Below, piece by piece: positions 9,907-13,165 of a stretch of 64,000 nt of DNA. This stretch comes from Octopus sinensis (taxonomy: Eukaryota). The notes below the pieces were generated by a model, which saw only the letters and a program-made list of their open reading frames with translations, was not told the origin of the DNA and did no database searches. Position 1 is the first letter of the stretch; the number at the start of each line of letters is the position of its first letter. Made by a program: the position numbers and the translations under genes. Location of the stretch: contig NC_043020.1 of NCBI RefSeq assembly GCF_006345805.1, positions 27,900,001-27,964,000 of the forward strand, in the 5' to 3' direction.

Positions 9907-10068
9907 CATACACACACACACACACACACACACATATATATATATATTAACAATTAAGGAACGGCCATAATAGGCCATTCACCCACTAGAAATAACAGCC
10001 AAAGCTTCTACCGCAAATAAAGATTAATTCCGTAAACAGGAGAAAATTAAAAAAACATTTACCCTGTA

Positions 10069-10174
10069 ATTTCTTGTACGGTATACCGTTTCATCCGCTG
10101 TTTAATGGTAAACTAACCTGATTAATTAAATCAAGCCAATCTTCCATAAGCCCTCGGATTCTTCAGCAAGAAAT
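10069..10174 (-). ncRNA. Type I hammerhead ribozyme, intact copy
   Basis: ATTTCTTG-CTGAAGA-ATCCG..CGGAT-GAAA-CGG TATA CCG-TA/CAAGAAAT. 8-bp stem I, full core, GUA cleavage triplet; predicted cut between 10077 and 10076. Confidence 0.88.
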
Positions 10175-10556
10175 AGCTCAAGTCGGAACAGATATTTACA
10201 CGAGGCATACCCAATCTTGCCAAGTCAATATCTGACCTAAAATTTTCAAATCGTCGCACTCGCGCCAAATTTATCGGCAGCAAATAAATATCAGCCGTCG
10301 ATTCCATTACGGAATTAACCAAAAAATTCATAATTAATCAATATAGGGTGGCAAGGAAAATTTTGTAGAATTTTATTGCCACCAGCGGCCCAGTGGGAAA
10401 AAATAAATAGTCATAGACCATTTTTAAGTTCAACATTAACAATTAAGGAACGGCCATAATAGGCCATTCACCCACTAGAAATAACAGCCAAAGCTTACTA
10501 CCGCAAATAAGATTAAATCCGTAAACAGGAGAAAATTAAAAAACATTTACCCTGTA

Positions 10557-10660
10557 ATTTCTTGTACGGTATACCGTTTCATCCGCTGTTTAATGGTAAA
10601 CTAACCTGATTAAATAAATCAAGCCAATCTCCATAAGCCCTCGGATTCTCAGCAAGAAAT
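10557..10660 (-). ncRNA. Type I hammerhead copy with 1-nt core deletion
   Basis: Core reads CTGAGA instead of CTGAAGA; stems intact. Mutation or sequencing error. Confidence 0.6.
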
Positions 10661-11043
10661 AGCTCAAGTCGGAACAGATATTTACACGAGGCATACCCAA
10701 TCTTGCCAAGTCAATATCTGACCTAAAATTTTCAAATCGTCGCACTCGCGCCAAATTTATCGGCAGCAAATAAATATCAGCCGTCGATTCCATTACGGAA
10801 TTAACCAAAAAATTCATAATTAATCAATATAGGGTGGCAAGGAAAATTTTGTAGAATTTTATTGCCACCAGCGGCCCAGTGGGAAAAAATTAAATAGTCA
10901 TAGACCATTTTTAAGTTCAACATTAACAATTAAGGAACGGCCATAATAGGCCATTCACCCACTAGAAATAACAGCCAAAGCTTCTACCGCAAATAAAGAT
11001 TAATTCCGTAAACAGAGAAAATTAAAAAAACATTTACCCTGTA

Positions 11044-11150
11044 ATTTCTTGTACGGTATACCGTTTCATCCGCTGTTTAATGGTAAACTAACCTGATTAA
11101 ATTAAATCAAGCCAATCTTCCATAAGCCCTCGGATTCTTCAGCAAGAAAT
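11044..11150 (-). ncRNA. Type I hammerhead ribozyme, intact copy
   Basis: Same stems and core as 10069-10174. Confidence 0.88.
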
Positions 11151-11528
11151 AGCTCAAGTCGGAACAGATATTTAACGAGGCATACCCAATCTTGCCAAGT
11201 CAATATCTGACCTAAAATTTTCAAATCGTCGCACTCGCGCCAAATTTATCGGCAGCAAATAAATATCAGCCGTCGATTCCATTACGGAATTAACCAAAAA
11301 ATTCATAATAATCAATATAGGGTGGCAGGAAAATTTTGTAGAATTTTATTGCCACCAGCGGCCCAGTGGGAAAAAATTAATAGTCATAGACCATTTTTAA
11401 GTTCAACATTAACAATTAAGGAACGGCCATAATAGGCCATTCACCCACTAAAATAACAGCCAAAGCTTCTACCGCAATAAGATTAATTCCGTAAAACGGG
11501 AGAAAATTAAAAAAACATTTACCCTGTA

Positions 11529-11639
11529 ATTTCTGTGTACGGTATACCGTTTTTTCATCCGCTGTTTAATGGTAAACTAACCTGATTAAATTAAATCAAG
11601 CCAATCTTCCATAAGCCCTCGGATTCTTCAGCAAGAAAT
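11529..11639 (-). ncRNA. Type I hammerhead copy, damaged
   Basis: Extra As in the GAAA segment and an insertion in the 3' strand of stem I. Confidence 0.5.
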
Positions 11640-12019
11640 AGCTCAAGTCGGAACAGATATTTACCAGCATACCCAATCTTGCCAAGTCAATATCTGACCT
11701 AAAATTTTCAAATCGTCGCACTCGCGCCAAATTTATCGGCAGCAAATAAATATCAGCCGTCGATTCCATTACGGAATTACCAAAAAATTCATAATTAATC
11801 AATATAGGGTGGCAAGGAAAATTTTGTAGAATTTTATTGCCACCAGCGGCCCAGTGGGAAAAAATTAAATAGTCATAGACCATTTTTTAAGTTCAACATT
11901 AACAATTAAGGAACGGCCATAATAGGAGGCTTCACCCACTAGAAATAACAGCCAAAGCTTCTACCGCAAATAAGATTAATTCCGTAAACAGGAGAAAATT
12001 AAAAAAACATTTACCTGTA

Positions 12020-12126
12020 ATTTCTTGTACGGTATACCGTTTCATCCGCTGTTTAATGGTAAACTAACCTGATTAAATTAAATCAAGCCAATCTTCCATA
12101 AGCCCTCGGATTCTTCAGCAAGAAAT
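12020..12126 (-). ncRNA. Type I hammerhead ribozyme, intact copy abutting the inversion junction
   Basis: All stems and core intact. The first base of stem I is the last base before the strand switch at 12127. Confidence 0.88.
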
Positions 12127-12217
12127 GCGCGAGTGCGACGATTTGAAAATTTTAGGTCAGATATTGACTTGGCAAGATTGGGTATGCCTCGTGTAAATAT
12201 CTGTTCCGACTTGAGCT

Positions 12218-12323
12218 ATTTCTGCTGAAGAATCCGAGGGCTTATGGAAGATTGGCTTGATTTAATTTAATCAGGTTAGTTTACCATTAAACAGCGGATG
12301 AAACGGTATACCGTACAAGAAAT
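12218..12323 (+). ncRNA. Type I hammerhead copy, 1-nt deletion in stem I
   Basis: ATTTCTG-CTGAAGA-ATCCG..CGGAT-GAAACGGTATACCGTA-CAAGAAAT. Confidence 0.75.
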
Positions 12324-12707
12324 TACAGGGTAAATGTTTTTTTAATTTTCTCCTGTTTACGGAATTAATCTTTATTTGCGGTAGAAGCTTTGGCTGTTAT
12401 TTCTAGTGGGTGAATGGCCTATTATGGCCGTTCCTTAATTGTTAATGTTGAACTTAAAAATGGTCTATGACTATTTAATTTTTTCCCACTGGGCCGCTGG
12501 TGGCAATAAAATTCTACAAAATTTTCCTTGCCACCCTATATTGATTAATTATGAATTTTTTGGTTAATTCCGTAATGGAATCGACGGCTGATATTTATTT
12601 GCTGCCGATAAATTTGGCGCGAGTGCGACGATTTGAAAATTTTAGGTCAGATATTGACTTGGCAAGATTGGGTATGCCTCGTGTAAATATCTGTTCCGAC
12701 TTGAGCT

Positions 12708-12812
12708 ATTTCTTGCTGAAGAATCCGAGGGCTTATGGAAGATTGGCTTGATTTATTTAATCAGGTTAGTTTACCATAAACAGCGGATGAAACGGTATAC
12801 CGTACAAGAAAT
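12708..12812 (+). ncRNA. Type I hammerhead ribozyme, intact copy
   Basis: Stem I 12708-12715 / 12805-12812, core CTGAAGA 12716-12722, predicted cut after A12804. Confidence 0.88.
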
Positions 12813-13165
12813 TACAGGGTAAATGTTTTTTTAATTTTCTCCTGTTTACGGAATTAATCTTTATTTGCGGTAGAGCTTTGGCTGTTATTTCTAGTGGGTG
12901 AATGGCCTATTATGGCCGTTCCTTAATTGTTAATGTTGAACTTAAAAATGGTCTATGACTATTTAATTTTTTCCCACTGGGCCGCTGGTGGCAATAAAAT
13001 TCTACAAAATTTTCCTTGCCACCCTATATTGATTAATTATATATATATATATATATATATATATATATATATATATATATATATATATATATATATAATA
13101 TATATATAATATATATATATATATATATATATGTAAATATATATATATATACATACATATATATA

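Follow-up and report, generated by a model that had tools for sequence, protein, structure and literature searches.

A 3.1-kb block of repeats in the genome of Octopus sinensis (positions 9946-13040 of NC_043020.1:27,900,001-27,964,000, a stretch of 64,000 nt that we call the window and to which all positions refer) is probably an insertion of a retrozyme, namely of the non-autonomous kind without long terminal repeats (LTRs) that is found in metazoans. The block contains about 6.4 copies of a non-coding unit with a consensus of 491 nt, and the motif of a type I hammerhead ribozyme (HHR) is present in each unit. A candidate retrozyme had already been proposed in the original prediction, and as far as can be judged from the sequence this reading is supported, because every feature of a metazoan non-LTR retrozyme that is testable at this level is present. 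The tandem repetition of units of about 488 bp, which had been claimed as well, is also found, but the units are distributed over two opposed arrays of 4.5 and 1.9 units and do not form a single head-to-tail array. The left part of the block (9946-12126) is described by Tandem Repeats Finder as 4.5 copies with a period of 487 bp, 96% matches, and 2% indels, and a repeat search identified the remainder (12127-13040) as about 1.9 further units that are the reverse complement of the left block. The seven HHR sites are spaced by 487-490 bp, and five of them belong to the minus strand, the other two to the plus strand. The block is thus composed of a minus-strand and a plus-strand array, which are joined 5'-to-5' (head-to-head) and both point outward in the sense of the ribozyme. 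Cutting the units at the predicted cleavage site and aligning them resulted in five full monomers of 486-490 nt, four partial monomers, and the 491-nt consensus. Further copies or fragments of the unit are not present elsewhere in the window. The coordinates of the arrays, their ends, and the single ribozymes are given in Table 1.

The motif in each unit reads, as RNA, 5'-AUUUCUUG CUGAAGA AUCCG (56 nt) CGGAU GAA ACGG UAUA CCGU A CAAGAAAU-3'. The catalytic core is complete and consists of CUGAAGA, GAAA, the A15.1-U16.1 pair, and an A at H17, and the cleavage triplet is GUA. Stem I comprises 8 bp, helix II 5 bp followed by a long extension, and helix III 4 bp closed by the UAUA loop. All elements of the structure that had been predicted, the 8-bp stem I, the CUGANGA/GAAA core, the 5-bp base of stem II, the 4-bp stem III with its tetraloop, and the GUA triplet, are therefore in place. 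The count of seven copies with four of them intact also holds, as copies A, C, E, and G are letter-perfect and copies B, D, and F are altered. The core itself (CUGAAGA ... GAAA ... U-A) is intact in copies A, C, E, F, and G, while indels alter it in copies B and D. For copy G, the position after A12804 is correct as the predicted cleavage site. Helix II carries an insert of 56 nt and comprises about 66 nt in all, and helix III together with its loop, ACGGUAUACCGU, is a perfect palindrome of 12 nt. The base of helix II is formed by an A10.1-U11.1 pair in all copies instead of the usual G-C pair, so that the pairing as such is kept. A G10.1-C11.1 pair at this position is strongly conserved in type I hammerheads but not invariant.

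It is hard to imagine that such a motif would have arisen by chance. In shuffled sequences the expected number of exact matches to the pattern is 0.00. A generic HHR descriptor of our own, which demands the core, at least 5 bp in stem I, at least 4 bp in helix II, at least 3 bp in helix III, and the U-H, and which was run on both strands, matches copies A, C, E, and G and nothing else in the window, and it has no match in 200 dinucleotide shuffles. Both the minimum free energy (MFE) and the centroid fold of the 121 nt around copy G (12700-12820) correspond exactly to a type I hammerhead, with three helices around the core, both RNA ends in helix I, and the CUGAAGA box unpaired. In this fold the 8 bp of stem I are followed by an internal loop and four more pairs, and the 5 bp of helix II lead into a long imperfect hairpin. 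With -40 kcal/mol (z -5.5), it is more stable than every one of 200 shuffles. The search with the Rfam Hammerhead_1 model, which had been suggested as a check, gave a divided answer. On the one hand, the model (RF00163, clan CL00010) is aligned end to end (positions 1-45) with 21.4 bits and an E-value of 0.086, and it is the sole ribozyme family matched when Rfam is scanned at an E-value threshold. On the other hand, this score lies under the gathering score of 34, and at the gathering thresholds the whole window has no match. The low score is explained by the 56-nt insert in loop 2 (helix II) and a 6-nt insert in loop 3. Taken together, the observation of the hammerhead is confirmed as real. 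Two other candidates were discarded. An Rfam match to MIR8007 at 12096-12249 is merely the hairpin made by the inversion junction, and a CUGAUGA-(5-bp helix)-GAAA core on the minus strand at 22033-22064 is a chance occurrence, which has neither stems I and III nor any Rfam signal.

The unit is non-coding and has a GC content of 36%. The longest open reading frame (ORF) in the consensus comprises 68 aa, none of the 14 consensus ORFs has a homologue at E <= 0.001 among 5.8 billion proteins, and an exact look-up of the 66-aa ORF of the repeat returned nothing on record. As a circle, the consensus is predicted to fold with an MFE of -144.5 kcal/mol and 59% of the bases paired (z -6.0 against 100 shuffles). 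The corresponding value for the antisense circle is only -103.2 kcal/mol, and this gap in energy points to structure on the strand that carries the hammerhead. Enforcing the HHR within the circle leads to a fold 3.2 kcal/mol above the MFE. Concerning the mode of cleavage, the original prediction had supposed that the unit cleaves as a monomer and does not need a dimer. Cleavage as a monomer is plausible because helix III has 4 bp and a tetraloop. In a transcript with two hammerheads, however, the predicted MFE structure pairs both 12-nt palindromes with each other, which is the arrangement of a double hammerhead, and given this predicted pairing the double mode is equally open. It had also been supposed that transcription of the array would release monomers of about 488 nt. 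Because the block is inverted at 12126/12127, a single RNA spanning both arrays would have the sense orientation in one part only.

The copies of the unit are very similar to each other. Of 3112 aligned positions, 40 deviate from the consensus, through 25 one-base deletions, 8 insertions, and 7 substitutions, and five of the substitutions belong to two small clusters within one copy. Most indels between the copies fall into homopolymer runs. With just the 7 substitutions in 3112 nt, the seven HHR copies are too alike to reveal compensatory changes in their helices. Either the array is very young and contains indel errors of unpolished long reads inside the repeat, or the indels are real slippage events. 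In either case, the three apparently defective hammerheads (B, D, and F) should not be taken at face value. The differences between the copies are almost exclusively indels of a single nucleotide, so that these broken copies may be errors of the assembly. One could go further and regard part of the block as an assembly artefact, with the inversion, the three defective HHRs, or both resulting from a chimeric long read, unpolished homopolymer errors, and a collapsed repeat. That 33 of the 40 differences are one-base indels, mostly in homopolymer runs, would fit such an origin, in contrast to the nearby 1.5-kb ORF of a major facilitator superfamily (MFS) protein (16901-18415, minus strand), which is intact, and polishing with short reads typically fails in repeats. 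However, the two sides of the inversion junction are not symmetric. A spacer of 92 nt (12127-12218) separates HHR E from HHR F and is present in one orientation only, the breakpoints are located at the different unit positions 393 and 302, and the junction is therefore not the symmetric fold-back or perfect palindrome of a chimeric read with a missed adapter. We regard an artefact of this kind as rather unlikely, and it would in any case touch only details, since the four perfect hammerheads and the tandem structure hold either way.

The anatomy of the block fits that of an insertion. The copies extend over more than one unit, an inverted and 5'-truncated copy is adjacent, and the surrounding sequence is an AT-rich microsatellite, whose left and right parts together presumably represent the target. 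A target-site duplication (TSD) is not recognisable. Copies of Penelope-like elements (PLEs) have been described with the same characteristics, as they form partial tandems, often together with an adjacent inverted 5'-truncated copy, and the Naiads clade of PLEs prefers (TA)n (PMC8557442). In experiments with a purified PLE protein, AT-rich DNA was the preferred substrate, and the protein differed from R2 and L1 in that both DNA strands were cut and extended (PMC11167929). Based on this anatomy and the two-strand activity of the PLE protein, the block can be read as the result of one PLE-type integration. Mobilisation of retrozymes by PLEs has already been proposed (PMC7229834). According to the published retrozyme model, the units would be transcribed as RNA longer than one unit, each type I hammerhead would cut after GUA (e.g. 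A12804), and the resulting 491-nt monomers with 5'-OH and 2',3'-cyclic phosphate ends would be closed into highly base-paired circles by the host tRNA ligase or by the ribozyme itself. Circles or multimers could then be reverse-transcribed at an AT-rich target by the PLE protein with its reverse transcriptase (RT) and GIY-YIG endonuclease, which would yield tandem copies. At the octopus locus one event within a (TA)n microsatellite, with both DNA strands serving as primers, would have produced two cDNA arrays of 4.5 and 1.9 units, whose 3' ends run outward into the TA repeat and whose truncated 5' ends were joined head-to-head. Transcription, cleavage, circularisation, mobilisation by a PLE, and the origin in a single event are all steps that we infer.

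The block could also be an ordinary local satellite or tandem duplication that grew by unequal crossing-over and was inverted by a replication fold-back, in line with the older view of newt Sat2, Schistosoma Sm-alpha, and pDo500 of cave crickets as hammerhead satellites. The hammerhead would then be a relic, or the transcripts would be cleaved without any role in mobility. Such an origin would account for the single locus and for the lack of a visible TSD, the near identity of the copies would be expected from recent duplication or homogenisation, and a hammerhead satellite of about 500 bp has a precedent (PMC2837043). We nevertheless consider it improbable because of the ends of the arrays. 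Both outer ends are 3' ends that are found at different positions of the unit (131 and about 237) and directly adjoin TA repeats, while the inner ends are truncated and inverted. This pattern is expected from target-primed reverse transcription on both strands and not from unequal exchange (PMC11167929, PMC8557442). In addition, a reinterpretation of the classical hammerhead satellites assigns these, too, to the retrozymes (PMC7229834).

Alternatively, the block might not be a separate non-autonomous element but the pseudo-LTR (pLTR) part of an autonomous PLE. The pLTRs of PLEs carry type I hammerheads (PMC4209133, PMC8557442) and occur in partial tandems with inverted 5'-truncated copies, and a fragment of a PLE ORF is present within the window. 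This fragment (Table 1) is old. It is broken by an in-frame stop codon (2952-2954) and by a frameshift around position 3440. Its best homologues share about 53% identity with it and contain RVT_1, GIY-YIG, and HTH_animal domains, and the assignment of the fragment rests on these domain-bearing homologues since Pfam does not recognise the fragment itself. It is degenerate, is separated from the array by 6.3 kb and a fragment of a long interspersed nuclear element (LINE), and shares no sequence with the unit, and it shows only that the presumed class of helper occurs in the same genome. There is no RT/GIY-YIG ORF within or adjoining the array, and the ORFs of the unit, with at most 68 aa, lack protein homologues. 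The flanks of the closest PLE homologue contain neither a hammerhead nor a terminal repeat and thus give no lead to a partner element. Moreover, metazoan PLE hammerheads are usually minimal with helix III absent or tiny (PMC4209133), whereas helix III of the octopus unit has 4 bp. An origin of the block from a PLE pLTR is therefore very improbable. The LINE-type fragment between the PLE fragment and the array (6277-9292, plus strand) encodes an APE endonuclease (Exo_endo_phos) and an RT (RVT_1) across several broken frames. A stretch of CT-rich low-complexity sequence (3720-4150) follows the PLE fragment.

The related Octopus bimaculoides offers a comparison for the site of the presumed insertion. 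The MFS ORF is sialin-like (SLC17), intronless, and uninterrupted, and its 504 codons encode a protein that is 93% identical to that of O. bimaculoides. Around this gene, 21 kb of the O. bimaculoides genome (CM046624.1:2429392-2450855) can be aligned with the window at about 82-92% identity over syntenic blocks, and the identity of the flanks is about 90%. No sequence of the unit is found in these orthologous 21 kb. Directly right of the (TA)n flank, the window contains a foldback element similar to miniature inverted-repeat transposable elements (13183-13300) with inverted termini of about 50 nt. The stretch 13164-13244 of the foldback region is conserved in the O. bimaculoides locus (18916-18996 of the 21-kb stretch), and beyond the foldback element O. 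bimaculoides has about 100 nt of unique sequence followed by (GT)n instead of (TA)n and the array. Past the (GT)n, the locus can no longer be followed in synteny with the window. The array is thus likely to be absent from the orthologous site in O. bimaculoides, as far as this alignment reaches. Two further observations belong to this comparison. The sialin-like ORF is a member of a large family of octopus paralogues. In addition, blocks on the minus strand at 34705-42779 share 86-91% identity with the locus of an O. bimaculoides gene with a SET_TTL/TTL domain (1-4056 of the 21-kb stretch) and are probably exons of the orthologous tubulin-tyrosine-ligase-like gene.

Several points weigh against the interpretation as a retrozyme insertion. 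A second locus or a diverged member of the family was not found in the searches of proteins, metagenome contigs, viral contigs, and the 64-kb window, and consequently there is neither covariation nor proof of mobility. Five pattern matches in metagenome contigs are chance matches to coding-like sequence without helix III or stem I, and the pattern scan of viral contigs resulted in no match. The hammerhead does not reach the Rfam gathering score, and the A-U pair at 10.1-11.1 may lower its activity, though compensatory changes at this pair have been reported in pDo500 (PMC2837043). Within the microsatellite neither a TSD nor a PLE "tail" can be recognised. The only PLE remnant of the window is the degenerate and distant fragment described above. 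Finally, only the right side provides an anchor for the comparison with the empty site, and there are N gaps in the O. bimaculoides locus. In the literature we found no report on hammerheads or retrozymes in octopus or other cephalopods, although our coverage of the literature is not complete, and no paper containing the sequence of the motif itself was found. The octopus unit is thus apparently a new family within a known class of animal mobile elements, the retrozymes.

In some invertebrates few small circular RNAs are as abundant as retrozymes, whose distribution, autonomous partners, and mechanism of integration are poorly known. With a cephalopod family, a clade of unusual RNA biology would be added to the hosts of retrozymes. 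It is possible, and we propose this tentatively, that the unit represents a cephalopod retrozyme family that is mobile now or was so very recently and whose atypical HHR is missed by Rfam, and that the block was created by a single PLE-primed insertion on both strands of a (TA)n target. The atypical traits of the hammerhead are the helix II of about 66 nt, the stable 12-nt palindromic helix III, which could serve in single or double mode, and the A-U pair at 10.1-11.1. Since the score of this hammerhead does not reach the Rfam threshold, annotation pipelines will overlook relatives in which helix II carries a long insert. If priming by a PLE on both strands indeed happened at this locus, it would have left the block as a natural footprint, formed in vivo, of the two-strand cleavage and extension that have so far been shown only in vitro. 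The head-to-head layout in a TA repeat with the 3' ends outside is a clean natural example to compare with the behaviour of the PLE protein in vitro. The general picture of the retrozyme class is not changed by the octopus unit.

The other repeats and elements of the window are listed here for completeness. Directly left of the (AC)n flank of the block, there is a tRNA-derived sequence similar to short interspersed nuclear elements (SINEs) at 9817-9909, in which ARAGORN calls no tRNA. Another tandem array (198-1262) contains 6.8 copies of a 158-bp unit, which matches dispersed sequences of O. bimaculoides and of the window and looks SINE-derived. Further tandem arrays are located at 48019-48710 (67 bp, 10.4 copies), 48986-49966 (252 bp, 3.9 copies), and 53574-53861 (26 bp, 11 copies). 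The (TA)n tract at 29238-32100 extends over 2.9 kb with a GC content of about 11%, and TA, TAGA, TATG, and TACA microsatellites are numerous throughout the window. A second LINE-type endonuclease fragment is found at 28041-28766 (plus strand). Lastly, an ORF fragment at 59706-60212 (plus strand) resembles by eye the C-terminal DDE part of a Tc1/mariner-type transposase but has no Pfam match at E <= 0.1.

Table 1. Features of the hammerhead repeat block and the PLE fragment. Cleavage sites are predictions.
Feature	Position	Strand	Description
PLE ORF fragment, degenerate	2403-3650	+	RT C-terminus (YIDD motif), Cys-rich linker, GIY-YIG endonuclease
Left flank microsatellite	9910-9945		(AC)12 (AT)6
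Left array	9946-12126	-	4.5 head-to-tail units of 487-490 bp; HHR sense is minus
Left array, outer 3' end	consensus position 131		..GTTAAT (RNA ...GUUAAU), directly against (AT)n
Left array, inner 5' end	consensus position 393
HHR A	10069-10174	-	exact; H17 at 10077, predicted cleavage between 10077 and 10076
HHR B	10557-10660	-	CUGAAGA box shortened to CUGAGA by loss of one A; inactive if this loss is real
HHR C	11044-11150	-	exact; H17 at 11052
HHR D	11529-11639	-	GAAAAAA replaces GAAA, and stem I has an additional C in its 3' strand; inactive if the changes are real
HHR E	12020-12126	-	exact; H17 at 12028; 5' strand of stem I abuts the inversion junction
Inversion junction	12126/12127		head-to-head (5'-to-5')
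HHR F	12218-12323	+	core intact; one T missing from the 5' strand of stem I
HHR G	12708-12812	+	exact; H17 is A12804
Right array	12127-13040	+	1.9 units; HHR sense is plus
Right array, inner 5' end	consensus position 302
Right array, outer 3' end	consensus position ~237		..TTAATTAT (RNA ...UUAAUUAU), directly against (TA)~65
Right flank microsatellite	13041-13165		(TA)~65

Among the known systems, the octopus unit is most readily compared to the metazoan non-LTR retrozymes, which contain type I hammerheads in tandem repeats of 150-450 bp with a GC content below 45% (Cervera & de la Peña 2020, NAR, PMC7229834). Transcripts of these repeats cleave themselves and build up in the form of circular RNAs with a length of about 170-400 nt and a high degree of base pairing, and the units comprise 350-390 bp in the mollusc Mytilus galloprovincialis, 220-240 bp in Acropora, and 330/350 bp in the axolotl (PMC7229834). 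Like these, the octopus locus has one type I HHR per unit, head-to-tail units of a few hundred bp, and no LTR, primer-binding site (PBS), or polypurine tract (PPT). It also shares the low GC content (36%), the absence of coding capacity, a monomer that is predicted to be self-paired, a palindromic loop 3, and the presence of PLEs in the same genome. In contrast, the octopus unit is somewhat longer (491 nt), has a 56-nt insert in helix II where 4 bp and a small loop are canonical, has 4 bp in helix III instead of the canonical metazoan 1-2 bp (PMC4209133), carries the A-U pair at 10.1-11.1, is below the Rfam threshold, comes from a cephalopod host, and is arranged in two arrays of opposite orientation. 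To the original prediction the unit had seemed larger than metazoan non-LTR retrozymes. A size of 491 nt is not exceptional, however, given published retrozyme consensus lengths of 51-972 bp (2026 preprint, bioRxiv 10.64898/2026.07.22.740005, which also reports a phylogenetic link to PLE pLTRs) and the approximately 500 bp of the pDo500 satellite of Dolichopoda cave crickets (PMC2837043).

With the pLTRs of PLEs the octopus block has in common the type I HHR, the partial tandem, the adjacent inverted 5'-truncated copy, and the AT-rich or (TA)n target (PMC4209133, PMC8557442, PMC11167929), but there is no RT-GIY-YIG ORF between its repeats and its hammerhead has three full helices and is not minimal. 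The pDo500 satellite is similar in its tandem unit of about 500 bp, its type I HHR that can in principle act as a single or double hammerhead, and the variation at 10.1-11.1 (PMC2837043). However, pDo500 constitutes about 5% of the genome, is conserved across species, shows compensatory changes, and is cleaved in vitro, whereas the octopus unit is represented by one locus of 6.4 units and by its sequence. The plant LTR retrozymes are likewise non-autonomous and encode a hammerhead-bounded RNA that circularises (PMC4918200), which for the octopus unit is a prediction. They differ in having type III HHRs within LTRs, a PBS and a PPT, a GC content above 55%, and a length of 600-1000 nt, and in their dependence on Ty3/Gypsy elements (PMC4918200).

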